A stretch of 64,000 bases of DNA, from contig OX638151.1 of assembly GCA_951804945.1 (NCBI GenBank), positions 31,620,001-31,684,000 on the forward strand, in the 5' to 3' direction. Under the pieces are notes generated by a model. The model was given only the letters and a program-made list of their open reading frames with translations. It searched no databases and had not been told where the DNA came from. The position numbers and the translations under genes are program-made. Source of the DNA: Podarcis cretensis. Lineage: Eukaryota. This document shows, one piece after another, positions 4,185 to 63,735 of this stretch (position 1 is its first letter; each line of letters opens with the position of its first letter).

Positions 4185-4312
4185 GGTTTTGAGCCAAGAG
4201 GAACTGCAATAGGACAGCGGCTGGTTACCTGGAATAATATGGTGAAAAACACAGGCTACAAAGCAACCTTAGCAAACTATCCTTTCAAATATGCAGATGA
4301 GCAGGCTAAGAG
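4185..4312 (+). CDS. DISP1: DISP1 coding exon ([42 protein letters not shown])
   Basis: catag acceptor, AG|GTAAGA donor, 128 nt, phase 0 to 2, in frame with flanking exons; not in the ORF track, translated by hand. Confidence 0.96.
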
Positions 4313-5169
4313 GTAAGAGCTTTTCAACCATGTTCTCTTCTGCTGTTGTTTTCCACTTACATATCGTATGAAACTAAATGTGGGAACTTATTTTAAACCT
4401 CTCCTCTCCCCCCCCCCCACCATACAACAAAAATAGCACTGCACACTTTTAACATCTGGCTCTCTTAATCATAAGCCCTGGTCAGTGTTAATAACAAGGT
4501 GGCATGCTAACAAACATTTACAGTGATATAAAAAACTATTTTGAATATTTGAATTCTTAAACCCTGGAAGTCATGTGAAACTTGATTTATTTTCTTAGGG
4601 AATTCTTACTTTATCCAGCGGCCACAGCCGAAAATGCGTAATGGAGCAGTATGCCCATATTAGTATAAAAAGCAGAGAACAGAGAGTAATGATGTTGTTG
4701 ACCCTGTTTTATGTTAGTGTTCTTTTAATGATAGAACTGTTCTTGAAAATCATGGTAGGAGCAGCTTGTTCTTTGTTTGGTTGTGGATAGGTATTCATCC
4801 CCCCTCCCTCCCGCATTCAGCTATATTTTAATTAATTTATTTTTAAGTGATTCATGGTGGGTTGCTCCACCCACCTGTCAGAGTTATCCTGCAGGTCGTG
4901 GGAGACATAAGTTCCCCATCCCTGCCAAAAACTGTTCTGCCAACCAGATTTTCCTGACCCTAACCAGTGACAACCTCAAGAAGTTCCAAACATCTGAGTA
5001 AAGAGGTATGTCTTTAGCACCCAACAAAACTGGAATACATTTATCTTCATGGCACTCCCCCCTCCCCCGCCACCTTTTTGTGCAGTTACTATTGAAACAA
5101 AGATAACTGTTAAAAGTGTAAGCTGTTTGACTGCTATATTTTAAAAGATGAAAAATTGTTCTCTCTTAG

Positions 5170-5267
5170 CCATCGAGATAACCGATATTCAGATGATCAC
5201 TATGAAAGAGAGAAGAGAGAAGCAGACTGGAATTTCCACAAGGACAGCTTTTTCTGCGACATTCCAA
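5170..5267 (+). CDS. DISP1: DISP1 coding exon with furin site ([32 protein letters not shown])
   Basis: ctctcttag acceptor, CAA|GTGAGT donor, 98 nt, phase 2 to 1; REKR at 5207-5218. Confidence 0.96.
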
Positions 5268-5310
5268 GTGAGTGTTAAGTGTGCAAAAATGTTAGGAAAT
5301 GAATCTAAAG

Positions 5311-5427: not shown

Positions 5428-6558
5428 ATCTAAAGCATGTGAGGAAGATGAACTAATATTTTACTTACAGTTGGTGCTATCTGTTGACCTTTTCAATTTC
5501 CCAGGAAATGTTCTTTTCAGTTTGTGAAAAGCAAGGGATGATTACCAAGCTACAAGTTCTTACTACCTTTAAGAGATTATCACCATAGTAGTGGCATTTA
5601 ACATGCACTTGTTTCCCCCCACCCATTAGATGATACGAAAATGTGCATGGGTGGAATTCAGTGTCCTGGTACTAGAAAGAGTGGGTCTACACAAGCATAT
5701 CAGACAGAACAATCCTCTCTCCCCTCTGCGGTCACTGTCTAGGGAGTCTCTAGATACACCCCCCCAAGCCCATTGTGGGGGGCACACAGGGAAGGAGACG
5801 TCACACAAACAGAAGTCCTGCACATGGCTTCTGCTATCAGGGTTCATTAGATGAATCCTCCACAATATTTCCAGGAAATCAATTTTTTACTTCCTTACCA
5901 GCTGCAGCTTTGTGAAGTTTGTGGTGTGGGAAGAAAGGGCATTTTGCATGTCCTCCTTTCTCACCACTGGAAGTAAATGGATAGCTGAATGCTTGCTTCT
6001 CCTTGGTGCTAGAACAAATGGGAGAGGTGTAAATGCTCCTCCTTCTTCTTTTAGCCCAGCCCACTCACACCAATAACACATTGGTCCCTTTGGCGCCATT
6101 TTTCAAAGTGTATTGATACTGAAAGTGTATGCACTAAAGTAAGACACTTGACTCTAGCAACTGATTATTACAAACTCAACATTTCTGAAAATGAATGTTA
6201 ACTTTATAAAACACCCCCCAGTTTCTATGTGCTGCTTTTCTTGGCAATTAGTTTCTATATGTTAATATAGTACAGAAGATGGTTTAGGCACACCAATTTA
6301 GGTAGGCTACATATTTTTATTATTAATAATAATTATTATTATTTTATTCATTACATTATAATTCCGCCTTTCCTCCATGAAGTTCAGTACTGCGTAAATG
6401 CTTCTCCACACCCATCCTATTCCCACAACAACCTTTTGAGGTAGGTTAGACTGAGACAGAGTGTCCCAGGGTGCTACTGAACTGAGAACATACCCTACAC
6501 TTTAACTCTCAAGGTCTTTAACATCAGAAACCTTCTTGATATGTCAATCTTATTTCAG

Positions 6559-6656
6559 GTGATCGCTATTCCCGAGTGGTATTTACATCAGCAGATGGAA
6601 ATAACTTGTGGAATTTACCTGCAATAAAATCAATGTGCAATGTGGATAATATGAGA
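6559..6656 (+). CDS. DISP1: DISP1 coding exon ([32 protein letters not shown])
   Basis: tatttcag acceptor, AGA|GTAAGT donor, 98 nt, phase 1 to 0; matches recalled DISP1 ECD1. Confidence 0.96.
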
Positions 6657-8408
6657 GTAAGTACAGATATCAAATTTTTATACGACTAATTGTGAAACTT
6701 CGTGTTCTTGTCTTTGATAATTACTAAAGTCTTGCTTGTCACAGCGTACTTATTGGCAGGCAACCATTAGGACAAAAGAAACTTTGCCTTTTACGCTGGT
6801 AATGATAATGCTGCCCAACATTTCTTTATGACCCCTTCTCAAGGTTAACAGTGCTGTCTGCTTCATTTTTTCCTACCCATTCCTATTCTGAATACTTTGT
6901 CTGAGGAGAGGAGCAGGATTTAGTATGCATTTTTCAGAATAAGACTTTGTCTTTCTCATTGATTGTTTTGTCATCTTGGCGAGGAAGCATTTTTTGCCCG
7001 TTTACAATACTCCTTAAAGTAGTTTTGTTGTGTGTGATTCCGTGAGTTGCTTAGGTTTGTAAGTCCAAAAGGGAATAGGTTGGCAATAGGGAATGCAGAC
7101 ATATATACAGTAACTTGCGTAAGTACCCCCCTGCAGCCCCCCAAAATAATTCAATCCAGATCGTGGTGTTCTGAGAAAGCAAAGTTTGCTTCCTCTTCAG
7201 AGCACAGGGGGATGAAAGAAGACACTTTGGTCTTGACTGCTCTGATCAGGAGAGAATGTTTTCCATCATCAAAATAGTTAGGGCCTTTTTTTATTCCCCC
7301 AAGGAACCAAAATGTAAAAAGTAACAGGCAGCCTCAGGGACTTCGTGAGTTCCTCCTGCATGTGTTAGAAGTTAACGTTGCATATAGTTGAGAATGAAGT
7401 CTGGTTTTAACTAATGGACCTTAACTGATGCAAGGTCTTTGGTAAAGTGAAGAGTATGTTCATATTGTGTATCTATGATATGTGAGCTTGTCACTCTCTG
7501 AATCTACAGTAGTTGGTATACTTTGACAGGTGCTGGAGCCTCAAAAGATGGTTGGTTCATTGTCTTGATCCGGATTGGATCACCATGCAAACTGCATGTG
7601 CTGGTGTCCAGTCCAGATTGGGACTCTAGCAGGAGAGAAAAGGGCTGTTGTCCCCCTGCTCCTCTCACCATGGTCCCAATCTGGGCCTGGTGTCCTGTGC
7701 TGGCTATTTCCGAAAGAAAAGCCACAGACAAACCACATGATTGGTGTCACGTGTAGTTTGCCCCTCGCTGTGCTGCTTGGCGGGCTGGTAGGGAAATGGA
7801 AAACTAGATTTTTGTGGGTTATCAGATTGTTATGTCCAACAATGCAAGAATCCATGCAAGTGGAAGTATGAGCACTCAGTTGTGGGATGTGTGTGCAGGA
7901 ATGAATGGGTAATAACTTATTTAGGGTTCACGTAATCATTCATTGTTGCAAGGCTTTCGCAACCCAACCTGCACGCTAGCTATAAGGGGAAATGTTTCAG
8001 TTACTGCTTAATACTAATATCTGCTTTTGAAAAAAGAATGAAAGAAAAACCTGCTTTTGAAGCACCACAAAATTGCAAAAGAAAACTGAATTCAAGCTGA
8101 AGAGCTTGTAATAGTGCTTTAATTTTTTTTCCAGTTCTAGGTGATTATAATAAAGCAAACAAGCCATTTATTTTATAACATAATTTTATTCAAGCAGCTT
8201 GACAGCTTTGCAGCACACTTGCATGGATGTTTACTTTAGAGGCACTTGAATAATTCTTATTATCATCATGATGACGAGGACGATGTCTAGCATAATCCCA
8301 ACTGTGGTTGAGTTGAAATCGTGGGCTACTTTTAAACCAGATGATAGCTTCTCAAGTTATTTGCTATCTTTGTAGACTCTATCATGAGTATTTGGAGAAG
8401 TAGCAATA

Positions 8409-13536: not shown

Positions 13537-14445
13537 GATATCTTCCAACATTCCCATTGCAAAAAGATAGCATGGGAACTAGTTCAAAAGACTAGTCTGA
13601 AAAGGTCTTTACCTGCGTATTGAAGCCTTGCCACAGTTTGTGCCAGTTAACTTCTAAATATGTCTAGGAAAATGACTTTCCTGCGGTCATCAGCAACTTT
13701 AATAGATGTGTGATAACCCTAGAAACATTGTGAAACGGCAGCCGTGTCAAGTGATTGAGAAATTCAAGTACCACATAAACGCTTAACCAAGCCACTTACC
13801 TGCCTGCCTGCATTGTTGCCTTTTCTTGATCTGGTGAAGAAAGGATTCATAGTCCTGACTGAAAACCAAGGAAAGAAGCAAAATTTAATTATAGTTTTGT
13901 CCACACAAGTCAGCCTGTTTTATATCAGATGATTTTTCTGTTCTTGGCTGTAGTTAAAGATACACTCAAGACTTCCAGGTGACCAGTTTTAACCAATTTG
14001 CACTCACATTTGTATAAATGTAGCTACAGCAGTGTGCTCAATTGAGAATTCCCGGTGCCTGTATTTTCCTTTGCCTTCAGTATACAGAGAAAAAATATTT
14101 CTGACGGAGTATATTGACTTTTTTGGTATGTGTTCAGATGAATCTACAGTCTCCAAAGTATGTTACCTTTAAAATGACATCTCATTTGCTATCTGATTGC
14201 TTAGTATAAATTGCTCTTGCTAAATGTGCATAAGGGAAGGACAGAGCTCAAAAGTGTGTGCAATTAGTGATCATAAAGAATTGGTTCCAAATCACTCAAA
14301 TGCTTCTTGAGAAATACCACAGTTGGAACTAATATTTTTAGAGATGGTAAGAAGATTTTTTTGTGGGCAACGAAAATGTTAAAATGGTGTTTGAGCTTTG
14401 CACTTCTGCTTCTTATTATAATTCTTTCTGTCTTTCTTTATGCAG

Positions 14446-17355
14446 ATACGATCCCATGCTCAGTTTGGTGATCTCTGCCAGAGGACCACTGCTGCTTCGT
14501 GCTGCCCCAGCTGGACGCTAGGCAATTACATTGCCATTTTAAACAACAGATCATCCTGTCAAAAGCTTGTGGAGAAAGATGTTTCTCACACTCTGAAGCA
14601 GCTCCGTACATGTGCCAAATACTACTATAATGGGACCCTGGGACCAGATTGCTGGGATATGGCAGCCAGAAGGAAGGACCAACTCAAGTGTACAAATGTG
14701 CCTCGTAAATGTACAAAGTACAATGCTGTTTACCAGATTCTCCACTACCTAGTAGACAAAGATTTTCTAAGCCCAAAGACTACAGACTATGTCTTACCAG
14801 CTTTAAAGTACAGCATGCTCTTTTCACCTACTGAAAAAGGGGAGAGCATGATGAATATCTATCTGGATAACTTTGAGAACTGGAACTCTTCAGATGGAAT
14901 AACCACCATCACAGGGATTGAGTTTGGAATAAAGCATAGTTTGTTCCAAGATTATCTTTTAATGGATACTGTGTATCCTGCTATAGCCATTGTGATTGTT
15001 CTCTTAGTCATGTGCATATATACTAAGTCCATGTTTATCACACTGATGACTATGTTTGCAATAATTAGCTCTTTGATCGTTTCTTATTTTCTTTATCGGG
15101 TAGTATTTAATTTTGAATTTTTCCCCTTTATGAACCTCACTGCACTGATTATTCTCGTCGGTATTGGGGCAGATGATGCTTTCGTATTGTGTGATGTATG
15201 GAACTACACAAAATTTGACAAGTCTCAAGCTGCCACTTCGGAGACGGTGAGCATCACCCTGCAGCATGCTGCCCTTTCCATGTTTGTCACCAGTTTTACC
15301 ACCGCCGCTGCCTTCTATGCCAATTATGTCAGCAATATTACAGCAATCAGATGTTTTGGTGTTTATGCTGGCACCGCCATATTGGTGAACTATGTATTAA
15401 TGGTAACGTGGTTACCTGCAGTCGTCGTGCTACACGAACGGTATCTACTCAATATATTTAGTTGCTTCAGAAAGCCTCAGGCAAGTGTGTACAATAACAA
15501 AAGCTGCTGGACAGTGTTGTGCCAAATGTTCCGCAAGGTTGCTTTCGCAGCCTCGGAAGCATCCCGGATATTTTTTGAGAAAGTGTTGCCACACGTAGTT
15601 ATCAGGTTTCGCTACATCTGGTTGGTCTGGTTCCTGGCCTTAACTGTTGGGGGAGCATATATCGTCTGTGTGAATCCAAAGATGAAGCTGCCATCCCTGG
15701 AACTCTCCGAGTTTCAAGTGTTCAGGTCTTCCCATCCTTTTGAACGCTATGACGCCGAGTACAAAAAGCTGTTCATGTTTGAACGTGTCCATCACGGAGA
15801 GGAGCTTCATATGCCAATCACTATTATCTGGGGGGTCTCTCCTGAGGATAACGGGGACCCCCTAAATCCCAAAAGCAAAGGGAAGCTGAAACTGGATAGC
15901 ACTTTCAATATTGCAAGCCCAGATTCACAGCTCTGGATTCTGAAGTTTTGCCAGAGGCTGAGAAATCAGACCTTTTTCTACCAAACGGAAGAGCAGGACT
16001 TCACAAGCTGCTTCATTGAGACGTTTAAGCAGTGGATGGAAAATCAGGACTGCGACGAGCCGGCTCTCTATCCGTGCTGCAGTCACTGGAGCTTCCCCTA
16101 TAAACAGGAGGTTTTTGAGTTATGCATCAAGAGGGCTATCATGGAACTTGAAAGAAGCACAGGGTACCATTTAGACAGCAAAACCCCGGGGCCTCGCTTT
16201 GACATCAACGATACCATCAGAGCAGTAGTACTGGAGTTCCAGAGCACCTACCTCTTCACCTTGGCTTACGAGAAGATGCATCAGTTCTACAAAGAGGTAG
16301 ATACCTGGATTGCGGATGAGCTGAGCACTGCCCCTGAGGGTCTAAGCAGTGGTTGGTTTGTGAGCAATCTAGAGTTCTATGATCTCCAGGACAGTCTCTC
16401 TGATGGCACTTTGATTGCCATGGGTCTTTCAGTGGCTGTTGCGTTCAGCGTAATGCTGCTCACAACATGGAATATCATACTGAGCCTTTATGCAATAGTT
16501 TCGATAGCAGGAACCATTTTTGTCACAGTTGGATCATTGGTCCTTCTTGGCTGGGAGCTAAATGTTTTGGAGTCTGTCACCATTTCTGTTGCTGTCGGCT
16601 TATCGGTAGACTTCGCGGTCCATTATGGCGTTGCTTATCGTCTAGCTCCCGATCCTGACCGAGAAGGGAAAGTAGTCTTCTCCCTCAGCCGCATGGGTTC
16701 GGCAATTGCTATGGCTGCGCTGACCACATTTGTAGCCGGCGCCATGATGATGCCTTCCACCGTTCTGGCATATACTCAGCTCGGTACATTCATGATGCTT
16801 ATAATGTGCATTAGTTGGGGCTTTGCGACCTTCTTCTTCCAGTGCATGTGCCGTTGCCTTGGGCCCCAAGGCACTTTTGGTCAGATTCCTCTGCCGAAAA
16901 GGCTGCAGTGCAGCGCCTTTCCCCAGGCGTTGTCGGGGAACAAAGGAGATGGGGAACAAAACAAAGCTCAGCCTGTCAGTAAGTATCAGTTGGACTCTAG
17001 AGGTCAAACAACGGGCATGGAACATGAGCATTACGAATTAGAGCCTTTGGCATGCCATGCCAACAACTGCAGCGCATTAGAGAAGAGAACCTATGAAGAA
17101 ACGCACATGTGCGGGGAGTTCTTAGATGGCAGGCTTGCAAATGAGCACGTCCTTCCCCAGTCAGCGTATAACAGCGACCTGAACGTAAGCAGCAAAAATG
17201 AATTCAGGATAGGCATGTTGTCTTCCGGTGAGCAGGACACCACTTGCCAGCTCTTATGTCAAAACCAGCAGTGTAGTTGCTCAGTTGATTATAAGCATGT
17301 GAGCATGAAATGGAGCCCCCATTCATGTCAGCAGTTAAAATTTGGGGTCAAATGA
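14446..17355 (+). CDS. DISP1: DISP1 large terminal coding exon (rest of ECD1, sterol-sensing domain, ECD2, TM8-12, shortened C-tail)
   Basis: Long pyrimidine tract + atgcag acceptor (AG 14444-14445); 969 codons [11 protein letters not shown]...LKFGVK*; RND motifs GIGADD (15160-15177) and GLSVD (16597-16611). Confidence 0.97.
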
Positions 17356-18039
17356 AACTTCATGCTACCTCTCTTCTCCTTTGTCCGGGAATGTGCATAG
17401 CCAGAGTTCTGTAGTTCGCGCAACTGCTTTGCATCATTCTTTCGATAGTTATGTGACTACCGCCCCAGCAAGTTCTGCACTGTAACTGTCTACAAAGCAG
17501 GTTAAAATTGCCCCTGAAATATTTTTTCTCCACTTACAGCAACTGTTTCAATCCCAAAGTCTTCCAAATGCCAAGAAGAACTTGAGAACTCCTCCAAAGG
17601 AAGCAAGTTCTTCTCCGTTTATCTTCAAGGGTGTTGGTACACTCTTGTTGTGAAATGGAGAAAAACGTACCTAATAATCGGAAGGGACTCTTGTGATAAC
17701 TGCAGAGACAAATGGGTTGTAAGAGTCACTGAAGTAAATGGGAACGAAAACAGAACGTCGAAATAAAAGCAAAATCCACAAATTGAAACTGAGTGCCTCC
17801 AGAACTTACAACAAACTGCTTCAGGTGTGAGGGCTAACCAGAATAAATGGAAATATACAGAAAACAGTACATCAACAAAGGCTTGGTTTTGAGTTGTGGC
17901 CTGAAAATTCCTGGTATTGTAATAATAAAGTGCAATTCTGTTGAGTGTCATATGCCAAACAGTGAAGCCCATGTGCCTGCTGTTGTTAGCACACCCAGAA
18001 CTTTCCCATGAAAGTTTGCTAATAAAAAAAACACTATAA
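17356..18039 (+). pseudogene. DISP1: Degenerate (frameshifted) remnant of the ancestral DISP1 C-terminal tail, now in the 3' UTR
   Basis: DISP1-like peptides in three frames: CYLSSP..VVRATALHHSFDSYV (17363 on), QQVLHCNCLQSRLK (17466 on), KCNSVECHMPNSEAHVPAV (17928 on), LAHPELSHESLLIKKTL* (17986-18039); compared with recalled human ...KCNSVDCQMPNMEANVPAVLTHSELSGESLLIKTL*. Confidence 0.88.
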
Positions 18040-18080
18040 TAAATCTTAAACTTGTTGGTTCTGTCTTTTTTGTGGGGGGA
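18021..18080 (+). terminator. Candidate DISP1 polyadenylation region
   Basis: AATAAA at 18021-18026 and 18038-18043 followed by a GT/T-rich stretch (cttgttggttctgtcttttttgt); a further AATAAA at 18273-18278. Confidence 0.6.
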
Positions 18081-19319
18081 TCTTTTCTCTTTTTAAAAGT
18101 AAGAATATTCCAACCTGCCCAAGCTGTCAAACACAAAGACATTAAAGTTAACACTCTCAAATTAAATGCTTCCTTAACTCATACAAATTAATTAGGTATT
18201 GTTCTCAAGAATATGAAGCCATGTTTAATTTAGGTCTTGGTGGAAAAAACAATGCATCCACACAAGTTGAAAAATAAAACATTACTAATCACCTTTTGGC
18301 AAGAGAAGATTAGTCATTGAGGTTATAATTATGCTGCTGAGGGGTTCTTGCAGTGTGGTCTGCATAAGTGATGGAGGCTCCGCCTTCCCCAGAGGAATAA
18401 AGTCGCAGCTGGCAGGGAAACAGGAAGGTCCCAAGCAGAGGAAAGAGACAGGCAAGGTACTTGAAATGAGCAGAGAATCAACATGTGGGAATGAAAGAAG
18501 CAGCAAGAAAAAGGAGGAGGAAGCAAGAGAATGCATTACAGGCGGAAAAAACATTTCCTGGTCTGCCAAGACTCTCCGCAATTTGCAAGTGGTGTGGGTG
18601 TAGGTGTGGAGTTTCTAAACCAATGTGCTGTATTATTCTGCCATTACTTACTATTCTCTTCTATTATCTATCTATTTACATTGGGTCAGCTAGAGACATC
18701 TCTTAAAGGATCAGGGAGGCTAATAAAACGACAAAATTCCCTGCACACAGATTATCTCATCTGCTTTTAACATTGTAAAAATAATCTGCTTCTACCATAT
18801 GTATCATGTTGCACGTTGACTTGGATCTAAAGAGATTACAGGTTTAAAATGGCACCAACACGCATTAGCTATTGGCATGATTTCATAAATGAGATCTGTT
18901 AAAATTTATTGCTTGTATAACATTCACAAAGAAGACTGAACCTAATCAGAAGCACAAATTGTACAGACTCTAAATGTTACCAATCTGTTTCACAACTCAC
19001 AGAATAGTACCATTGGGTAAATTAGTTCAAACAAATGCTTGAATTTTTATGTGTTTCTCACTTTACATTCCCCAAGAGTTCCAACCAAAAAAGCACTTTC
19101 CTCCTGCTCTTTTGGCATAAATGAATGTCATGGGCACCTATTTGAATAGCAATTAAATATAGCCCGCTCTTCATGAGTTACACTCCCTCTGAAGGAGCAG
19201 GTATGCAACTTGGGGATACTTCTGGACCCGTTGCTGTTGCTTGAGGCTCAGGTGTGACACAAAGTGCCTTTGATCAGCTTCAGCTCATGTTCCATCTACA
19301 CCCTATCTGGACACAGGTA

Positions 19320-61110: not shown

Positions 61111-63735
61111 CTAAGAAATGGTAATAACTTTCATTTCCAATGTCTTTGATTTCTTCCTCCTGAGTTTCTTCTTCTTCTTCTTCTGTTTTTTTTTTACTTC
61201 CTTCTTCCTCAGTATTTGGTGAGAAAGTGCATTTAGAAACCATTCCACATCTTGGGGGTCTTCAGGCCACCTCAAGTATTGACCCCTTTGCAAAAACACT
61301 CTGACTGGTTGATACTTCATAAGCTGATATTGCGAAAGTGATCCAGCCACCACCATTATGAGGACATCTTTCAGGTCACAAAAATACCGACTCTGAGCAA
61401 AATTAAAAGCTTCGACGCACCAGCCATCCTTGAGAAACTGCTTTGTCACTACGCAAATTGTTTTCCTACAGTTCCAAATGGCATCACGAATGTTGGTGAT
61501 GTGATCCTCTCCTGGCAAGAAATCTCGCTCTTCAAAGCAGAGAGCAAATTTGTTTTTATCAGAATACTGGATGTCTAGGTGCCTTATCAAGGAGTTCTGG
61601 ACCCACTCAAAATCCTTGCTGCTGTAGCACATGTAGGCATCGTATCTATAGGTCTCTTCCTCCAACGCTGGCTGTTGCTCCTTCAAGAATACTCTTACCA
61701 CGGTCTTATACCAAATGAAGCAGGTTCCTCTAAAGCGAGCAAAAACAATCACCACCGTTAGGAACATTGTCACAGCAACGGTGGTAAAAATGAAGAGCGA
61801 CAACTGCAGAGGCTCCAATATCTTGTCTTCATTGCAATCATCAACATTAAACTCATGAAGGCTTTTGCCAGCAAGATCAGGGGGTCCAAAACAAAACCTT
61901 TCATCTGGTGACCCAGCTAAGGTGACATTGGTTTGGTTCAGCCACACAATTAGGTCACTTAAGAGGCAATTACAGTAAAATCTGTTATAGGTGATATCCA
62001 GATTGTCCAGAGTTGCAAAGAGCTGAGGATCTGGATAAAGCAGCTGGTTCGAGGATAAGTCAAGTTTCCTGAGGCTCACAGGAAAAGCACTGTGAGAAAT
62101 GTAAGTTAAGAGGTTTGAAGCCAAGTTAAGCCTAACCAGTGATACCAGGCCATCAAAGATGCCCTCTGGAAGGAAACTAAGGTAGTTATTATTGAGATGC
62201 AGGACCTGAAGCTTGGACAACGCCTTGAACACATCCAAGCACAAACTTCTCTCCCACACAAGCTTCAACATATTGTCTCCAAGATCCAAGTAGAGCAACT
62301 GGTTGTCTTCTGCTATATTGTTGTACCTGTAGCAGTAGGAGAAGCGATTATTTCTTAACAAAATATACTGGATATCTGGATATTGGAGAAGTTCATAGAG
62401 GTCTCCCAGATTGTCCATCCTGTTTCCTCCCATGTCAACATATGTTGAATTTATAGCCACTATTTTGCTGTGGTCTCCAGACTGTATCCGGTTGCTACCT
62501 AAAAAAGCATAGCTGAGACTTGGGAGTGTTAAGATTACTTTTAGAGCATTGTCACTGAGGTCCACAGTGTGAAGGTTTGGCAAGCCTTTAAATGGAGCCC
62601 TATCAATCACCCCAATATGATTGTGTTGCAGAGCTATAACACGCACATTTAGAAGACCTTCAAAAGTGTAATCCAAGAGTTCTCCCAGCAGATTGTACGA
62701 CAGGTCTAGGTGTTGTAGGTTCCAGAGACCAAAGAATACTTCTTTTTGAATTTTATTTATGTTATTTGAGTTGAGATCCAGCAATTCCAGATCACCAAGA
62801 TATTGAAATACACGTGGGTTAAGAGAAAAGATAAAGCCATGTGAAATATTAAGCAGGCGAAGGCCACTCTGGGCCAGACCTGCAAATGTATTGTTGTTTG
62901 GGTCTGGCATGTTATTAAAGCCAAATGATGAGCCCATGGTGTGAGGCGATATCTTCAAACCCGTAAGTGGTGTTCCCTGAATAGCTGCACAAAATTGCTG
63001 GGTTGTTCTTATACCCCAGCCATTGCTACCAACATCCAGCGTATCGAAGACAATGTTTTTGAAAGGATTGCCACAAGTTGCCCAGTCTTGAGAATCTTCT
63101 TTAAACAAACCATTAGAATTAAGATTCAACAATGTGAAAGCTTTTCCTTGAAAGCTGTAGAGATCTCCCTCACATATGGTTTCAATGCGGTTTAATTTCA
63201 AGTTCAGAAGTGTTAACTTTTGCATGTTGCGCAATGAAGGGTGAGGGTGAAGCCTAGTGATCTTATTGAATGCAAGCTCCAGATATTCCAGAGAGACCAA
63301 ATCTTTAAAGTAATCCTTTTCCAGAATGGATTCGTTAAGATCATTATAGTATAGCAGAAGGTTACTTAACTTCCCCAGCCCCCTGAAAGCCTGTGGATCC
63401 AGCACAATCATTTTATTGTAAGCTAAATCCAGTTGATGAAGATTTGGCAAATTCCTAAAAGCATTTTCTCCTACTGTGACAGGAGAGACCAGCTGGCTTC
63501 CAAGTGAGAGAACCGTCAATGTCTCCAGCAGTGGGAAGGATGTGGCATTCACTTGCTGGATGAAATTGAAATTTAGGGAGAGTAAAACAATGCCTTCAGG
63601 CAGAGGGGGAACCTGTGTGAAGTTGCACCACTCGTAGTTCACAAGCCTGCCTGTGACGGCACACCGAGGATCTGCATTTATTTCTCTGTATGCAAATGTC
63701 AGTCCAATGAGAAATAGTAGGTGACCATGAAGCAT
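61111..63735 (-). CDS. TLR5: Toll-like receptor 5 (membrane form), single-exon CDS, 874 aa
   Basis: Signal peptide, LRR array, TLR5-type loop GSSFGFNNMPDPNNNTF, LRRCT (NRFYCNC...CFGP), TM helix LQLSLFIFTTVAVTMFLTVVIVF, TIR with YDAYMCYS and CFEERDFLPGE, basic tail; adjacent to DISP1 as in other amniotes. Confidence 0.97.
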   Translation of the reverse strand: MLHGHLLFLIGLTFAYREINADPRCAVTGRLVNYEWCNFTQVPPLPEGIVLLSLNFNFIQQVNATSFPLLETLTVLSLGSQLVSPVTVGENAFRNLPNLHQLDLAYNKMIVLDPQAFRGLGKLSNLLLYYNDLNESILEKDYFKDLVSLEYLELAFNKITRLHPHPSLRNMQKLTLLNLKLNRIETICEGDLYSFQGKAFTLLNLNSNGLFKEDSQDWATCGNPFKNIVFDTLDVGSNGWGIRTTQQFCAAIQGTPLTGLKISPHTMGSSFGFNNMPDPNNNTFAGLAQSGLRLLNISHGFIFSLNPRVFQYLGDLELLDLNSNNINKIQKEVFFGLWNLQHLDLSYNLLGELLDYTFEGLLNVRVIALQHNHIGVIDRAPFKGLPNLHTVDLSDNALKVILTLPSLSYAFLGSNRIQSGDHSKIVAINSTYVDMGGNRMDNLGDLYELLQYPDIQYILLRNNRFSYCYRYNNIAEDNQLLYLDLGDNMLKLVWERSLCLDVFKALSKLQVLHLNNNYLSFLPEGIFDGLVSLVRLNLASNLLTYISHSAFPVSLRKLDLSSNQLLYPDPQLFATLDNLDITYNRFYCNCLLSDLIVWLNQTNVTLAGSPDERFCFGPPDLAGKSLHEFNVDDCNEDKILEPLQLSLFIFTTVAVTMFLTVVIVFARFRGTCFIWYKTVVRVFLKEQQPALEEETYRYDAYMCYSSKDFEWVQNSLIRHLDIQYSDKNKFALCFEERDFLPGEDHITNIRDAIWNCRKTICVVTKQFLKDGWCVEAFNFAQSRYFCDLKDVLIMVVAGSLSQYQLMKYQPVRVFLQRGQYLRWPEDPQDVEWFLNALSHQILRKKEVKKKQKKKKKKLRRKKSKTLEMKVITIS

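Follow-up and report, generated by a model that had tools for sequence, protein, structure and literature searches.

Coding exons of DISP1, a gene required for long-range Hedgehog signalling, are present in a 64,000-nucleotide window of the genome of the lizard Podarcis cretensis (GenBank assembly GCA_951804945.1, contig OX638151.1, positions 31,620,001 to 31,684,000 of the forward strand). In this window the DISP1 reading frame stops well ahead of the ancestral stop codon, and the old tail persists behind it in broken frames. Very probably, the tail of the protein was truncated by a frameshift in a lacertid ancestor, with its relic decaying behind the stop. An earlier reading of the bare letters (the original prediction) had proposed that the truncation is natural and specific to the lineage, with former coding sequence remaining behind the stop; our analysis supports this proposal and widens it to several lacertid genera.

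As we understand it, a frameshift in the ancestor of the sampled lacertid genera would have cut DISP1 about 234 residues short, the lesion of today being a 13-nt insertion. The 12-transmembrane (TM) transporter core and about 165 residues of the tail would be kept under strong constraint. The rest of the tail would be untranslated and would undergo roughly neutral decay inside a presumed 3' untranslated region (UTR), where it would have gained seven further frame-disrupting indels, one stop codon and an excess of replacements. The truncated protein would still work, as Scube2-dependent release of SHH would need the core only. A stop codon in a last exon has no exon junction downstream, and thus escapes the nonsense-mediated decay (NMD) that depends on the exon junction complex (EJC). 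Since the new stop lies in the last exon, with presumably no junction after it, the mRNA should escape EJC-dependent NMD.

The relic of the tail and its lesions

Five DISP1 coding exons were located in the window by tblastn, all on the + strand, with the large last one starting at about 14440. The features of this last exon, and of the DNA behind it, are as follows.

14440..17352, + strand: retained part of the last coding exon, covering the second half of the transmembrane core and a cytoplasmic stub of ~165 residues (ungapped tblastn high-scoring segment pair, HSP)
17338..17350, + strand: frame-shifting 13-nt insertion between ancestral QQL and NET, absent from the six intact squamate tails aligned
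17353..17355, + strand: present stop codon TGA, the end of the open reading frame (ORF)
17356..18036, + strand: relic of ~227 ancestral tail codons (tblastn, frameshift-aware alignment)
near 17465 (+1), 17520 (~-19), 17645 (~-8), 17691 (+1), 17884 (+1), 17924 (~-11) and 17980 (+1), + strand: seven further frame-disrupting indels of the relic (frameshift-aware alignment)
17764..17766, + strand: TAA in the local ancestral frame of the relic (alignment, tblastn)
near 18028, + strand: in-frame 3-nt insertion, an extra codon of the relic (frameshift-aware alignment)
18037..18039, + strand: old stop codon TAA, preceded by what is left of the conserved ...ESLLIKTL end (alignment)
18038..18043, + strand: AATAAA, a candidate proximal poly(A) signal overlapping the ancestral stop (pattern scan)

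The last-exon ORF runs from 14440 to 17355, with 971 residues from its first ATG, or 969 codons when counted from 14446. Between 14440 and 17340 it aligns as a single ungapped HSP with eight reptile DISP1 proteins, at 89-94% identity. Over 969 residues it is 94% identical to the DISP1 of Rhineura floridana, and the best 120 database matches of the ORF are vertebrate DISP1 in every case (120/120). Additionally, the Sterol-sensing, Patched and MMPL families of Pfam match a Podarcis orthologue that is 99.3% identical to the protein of the window, as befits an RND-type core. The C-terminal end that is conserved elsewhere (...ELS.ESLLIKTL in amniotes) is present here solely as an untranslated, frame-broken relic at about 17985-18036. 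Its absence from the translated protein is the finding itself, and no argument against DISP1 orthology. A second, intact tail exon, or any other tail-like match, was not found by tblastn anywhere in the 64-kb window.

Behind the stop, tblastn finds homology to the DISP1 tail at 17351-17647 in frame 2, at 17466-17999 in frame 3 and at 17692-18027 in frame 1. The combined E value is 2.5e-40 with Rhineura, and lies between 1e-33 and 1e-10 with Varanus, Python, Salvator, Anolis, tuatara and gharial. The similarity to orthologous tails is significant, as the original prediction required, and the homology of the sequence behind the stop to orthologous coding sequence goes beyond chance similarity. 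The relic peptide ends ...HPELSHESLLIKKTL, followed by the TAA at 18037-18039. Thus the ORF end at TGA 17353-17355, the tail peptides in three frames and the final peptide ahead of the old stop, which had all been read from the letters, are confirmed by the ORF, tblastn and alignment. The arithmetic of that reading holds as well. The interval 17356-18036 measures 681 nt, or 227 codons, and together with the 969 retained codons it gives 1196, which fits the single-exon ORFs of 1199-1214 residues found in other species on genomic Logan contigs. Ancestral coding sequence and genome are colinear throughout 14440-18039.

The lesions were placed by a frameshift-aware dynamic programme, which matched the C-terminal 300 residues of DISP1 from six squamates to positions 17149-18036. 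All six alignments agree on eight frame-disrupting indels. The first of these, the 13-nt insertion at 17338-17350, creates the new C-terminal end KFGVK. The shifts of the eight indels sum to -21, which brings the final relic segment back into register with the ORF. None of the six alignments shows a frame change in the ~63 retained codons ahead of the break. The lesions are confined to the relic: within 681 nt there are one stop and eight frame-disrupting indels, as opposed to none in the 2907 nt upstream. Most of them lie outside homopolymers, although the one at 17465 falls in a run of four C. The original prediction had described such a contrast, with several frameshifts and stops, mostly outside homopolymers, behind a clean upstream stretch of 2.9 kb, and it is borne out here.

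When the frame is corrected, the sequence is 72.5% identical to Rhineura over 284 aligned codons (the ~63 retained ones and the relic), and the relic by itself is 71.9% identical. The G+C content is 0.49 in the stub, 0.41 in the relic and 0.38 in the non-coding DNA downstream. A further AATAAA motif is found at 18021.

Rates of change in core, stub and relic

The last-exon products of 13 species were aligned with MAFFT, the relic of the window carrying an X at each break. Three-point branch lengths were then obtained at the protein level for the window and for Rhineura against eight outgroups. Changes in the window were also counted at sites without variation among eight other squamates.

Transmembrane core: lacertid/Rhineura branch ratio 0.6-1.1; window changes at invariant sites, 5/668
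Retained cytoplasmic stub: lacertid/Rhineura branch ratio 1.3-4.0; window changes at invariant sites, 2/52
Relic, frame-corrected: lacertid/Rhineura branch ratio 3.2-6.9; window changes at invariant sites, 16/81

When each of the eight other squamates is compared with the other seven, 1-13% of the relic-equivalent invariant sites are changed. Both the protein-level rates and the invariant sites point to a relaxed constraint on the relic. Its nine indels, set against ~67 expected substitutions, represent by our estimate an ordinary neutral ratio. The core is 99.6-99.9% identical among lacertid genera, and 95-97% identical to the other full-length squamate DISP1 proteins.

The stub (16860-17337, ~165 residues) shows 95.7-97.6% identity among the four lacertids. 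To judge from these sequences, constraint on the remaining stub may also be relaxed, the counts being small.

Sharing among lacertids and age of the truncation

Annotated lacertid DISP1 proteins were drawn from the 90% cluster represented by an Anolis isoform. They comprise a protein of 1299 residues in Zootoca vivipara, isoforms X2-X4 of 1357, 1331 and 1299 residues in Podarcis raffonei, and four models in P. lilfordi, with lengths that include 1163, 1299 and 1561 residues. The end ...QQLKFGVK is common to the ORF of the window and to the Zootoca, P. raffonei and P. lilfordi models, for example XP_034967302.1, XP_053239065.1 and CAI5770922.1 (1299 residues), respectively. Over 969 residues, the protein of the window is 99.0-99.3% identical to those of Zootoca and the two Podarcis species, with 7-10 residue differences. 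The first lesion and the stop are thus seen, at the level of the protein end, in four lacertids.

Intact tails that end in ...ESLLIKTL, in proteins of 1513-1551 residues, are found in Rhineura, Salvator, Anolis, Sceloporus, Pogona, Hemicordylus, Tiliqua, geckos, Varanus, snakes, tuatara and gharial. Full-length squamate DISP1 (Rhineura floridana XP_061481097.1, 1529 residues; Anolis, Varanus, Tiliqua, Python) has the same exon structure as the window. However, its reading frame continues to ...ESLLIKTL, through a stretch that in the window is interrupted by eight frame breaks and a stop. Rhineura, an amphisbaenian and the nearest outgroup among the sequences compared, has an intact DISP1. Because four lacertids have the same KFGVK end, we place the insertion and the stop before the divergence of Zootoca, Podarcis and the species of the window. 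Judged from these protein ends, the truncation is common to several lacertid genera rather than private to one species, and the 13-nt insertion and stop would have arisen after the split from amphisbaenians. It is this insertion that truncates the present protein, and any lesion downstream of it could be older.

Sampled 31-letter words of positions 16800-18200 were looked up in sequencing runs. In other samples of the same organism 83-85% of the words were present, and in five further organisms 38-80%, which points the same way as the shared protein end, but more weakly. All six runs guessed to be RNA in which any of the words occurred came from a single organism and held 0.34-0.37 of them, as against 0.38-0.39 in the genome runs of that organism, a share compatible with a transcribed relic. 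An exact look-up of five ORFs, in or beside the relic, on Logan contigs gave no match to a relic in other lacertids, and a homology search for such relics with a 115-residue antisense ORF (17628-17972) gave none either.

The neutral rate of squamates is near 1e-9 per site per year, approximately. The 0.22 replacements per codon, with ~2.25 non-synonymous sites per codon, correspond to ~0.1 substitutions per nucleotide and give a rough age of the order of 100 million years. An origin in the lacertid stem or early crown would agree with this figure, which exceeds the minimum set by the split of Zootoca and Podarcis.

The 90% cluster with the lacertid DISP1 proteins also lists a 182-residue "protein FAM177B [Lacerta agilis]", and the cluster of Salvator DISP1 lists a 31-residue Brassica protein. 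Both entries look like artefacts of database clustering.

Dispensability of the tail and competing readings

The break corresponds to about residue 1290 of the 1524-residue primate DISP1, with ~230-234 residues lost. This numbering follows gibbon DISP1, which has the same length as the human protein quoted in PMC7362390. No Pfam domain was found in the tail. What is lost is cytoplasmic tail, and the essential part of DISP1 is untouched. The original prediction spoke of the truncation of an essential Hedgehog-release protein. The truncation stands; the qualification needed is that the part removed is dispensable for SHH release in cell assays.

Chen et al. (PMC7362390) showed that human DISP1 lacking residues 1-171 and 1249-1524 still releases SHH from Disp1-null fibroblasts. 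A passage of the same paper cites an earlier report, in which removal of the C-terminal domain gave only a mild reduction. Li et al. (PMC8630017) found that a protein with G1141-L1524 deleted efficiently rescued Scube-dependent SHH release, and the 380 residues after TM12 were unresolved by cryo-electron microscopy. Both engineered deletions remove the same region as the lacertid truncation and more of it, and both keep Scube2-dependent SHH release in DISP1-null cells. With its break at about 1290, lacertid DISP1 keeps more tail than these two working human proteins, whose deletions start at 1249 and 1141. The human proteins are constructs in cultured cells, whereas the lacertid case represents a test in the whole organism over evolutionary time.

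Frogs provide a second natural case. At least 12 anuran DISP1 models have ~1195-1207 residues, including those of Xenopus, Hymenochirus, Bombina, Discoglossus, Pelobates, Pelodytes, Rhinophrynus, Hyla, Rana, Bufo, Mixophyes and Hyperolius; one Bombina isoform has 966 residues. Like the lacertid protein, anuran DISP1 has lost its long cytoplasmic tail and kept the core (87-89% identity). However, it stops earlier, 18 residues past a motif and near residue 1205 in the primate numbering. The Ascaphus model (1523 residues), salamanders and caecilians keep the tail and end in ...ELS.ESLC. From these models, frogs other than Ascaphus look like an independent, earlier-placed loss of the tail, and together with the lacertid truncation this would mean that the tail was lost at least twice in tetrapods. 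Given that the tail is dispensable in cell assays and missing in most frogs too, the lacertid loss, which appears to be real and old, was probably harmless.

Several points weigh against so simple an account. The extreme C-terminus is conserved as ...ELS.ESLLIKTL in mammals, birds and reptiles, and as ...S.ESLC in amphibians, coelacanth, sturgeon and bowfin. Its conservation over the span from sturgeon to mammals means that it must have a role outside what fibroblast release assays measure. Work of Etheridge et al., as cited in a passage of PMC7362390, also speaks on this side, and PMC9768590, in the passage that cites Etheridge et al. 2010, places basolateral sorting information in the intracellular region. 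Additionally, the lesions downstream of the first one are known from this assembly alone. Finally, the last ~37 codons of the relic (17925-18036), although they hold a frame break and two indels, show 0/23 changes at invariant sites, compared with 16/58 elsewhere in it (Fisher p = 0.004, post hoc). Uniform neutral decay would not predict such a difference. We treat this well-kept end as unexplained and not as evidence of function, its two segments lying in different frames. It could reflect chance, or a constraint at the nucleotide level near the 3' end of the mRNA.

The same observation speaks for an alternative in which some lacertid transcripts still make the extreme C-terminus, for instance through an intron inside the last exon that joins the ORF to the final relic segment, or in which this segment has been retained because it serves a non-coding function close to the mRNA 3' end. 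That final segment shares its frame with the ORF, and the AATAAA motifs at 18021 and 18038 stand close by. Against it, the two well-kept segments are in different frames, with the break near 17980 between them, and KFGVK is the end of every listed model, namely RefSeq isoforms X2-X4 of P. raffonei and the four of P. lilfordi. Moreover, the splice is hypothetical and the statistic was picked after seeing the data, and we consider this alternative improbable. A broader reading is also improbable. Lacertids and most frogs may have independently dropped a motif conserved since before the split of ray-finned fish and tetrapods; its role, perhaps in the polarised sorting of DISP1, could have been rewired. 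The unusually well-kept last ~120 nt of the relic might still be under selection, whether for an RNA element at the 3' end or for a rare isoform made by splicing.

An error of assembly or sequencing, with a tail intact in the animal and artefactual indels, can draw on the fact that four of the eight breaks are a net +1 and that one of these (17465) lies in a run of four C. Yet the adjoining 2.9 kb of coding sequence is free of indels, four of the lesions are large (+13, -19, -8 and -11), most lie outside homopolymers, and 83-85% of the 31-letter words recur in other individuals. Furthermore, the truncating frameshift and its KFGVK end are present in three other species with independent assemblies and annotations; for that lesion, an error of assembly is thereby ruled out. 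We give the error hypothesis hardly any credence, in agreement with the original prediction, which had held real decay to be likelier.

Decay of the whole DISP1 gene in lacertids, with the tail as the first part to go, would fit the faster stub on the lacertid than on the Rhineura branch, but is exceedingly unlikely and was rejected given the conserved, clean core: the core has few changes at invariant sites, hardly differs between lacertid genera and does not exceed Rhineura in branch length, four species have a clean 969-codon ORF, and the protein identities already imply a core ratio of non-synonymous to synonymous rates clearly below 1 across lacertids.

The favoured account, a tail truncated by a frameshift in a lacertid ancestor, leaves the understanding of the Hedgehog pathway unchanged. 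The truncated protein is already in RefSeq (e.g. Zootoca XP_034967302.1, 1299 residues), and the event is implicit there. The RefSeq and GenBank models of lacertids are bare annotations, without a remark on the ~230 missing residues or on the persistence of the old tail. We found no paper on the lacertid truncation in the literature on DISP1 with lizards, Lacertidae, gene loss or the frog tail. The truncation of the DISP1 tail in several lacertid genera, apparently a fixed one, adds a new case to a type of event that is already familiar. For annotation, it means that the 1299-residue lacertid DISP1 is not a partial model. For biology, cell assays call the ~380-residue tail dispensable, although its last residues have been conserved throughout jawed vertebrates. 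The two natural, long-lived deletions, in lacertids and in frogs other than Ascaphus, would indicate that whole animals with normal Hedgehog-dependent body plans manage without the tail. Truncated and intact orthologues represent ready material for probing the role of the tail in trafficking and gradient range.

The remaining coding features of the window lie on either side of this exon.

~1013-1138, 4185-4310, 5168-5272 and 6552-6677, + strand: four upstream DISP1 coding exons (tblastn HSPs, 72-100% identity to Rhineura, Salvator, Anolis and Varanus DISP1)
61111-63735, - strand: clean single-exon ORF of 874 residues, with leucine-rich repeats and a TIR domain (Pfam), a Toll-like receptor

The original prediction had named the latter gene TLR5 and called it clean. 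The clean Toll-like receptor ORF is there, and its identity as TLR5 is consistent with the Pfam domains.

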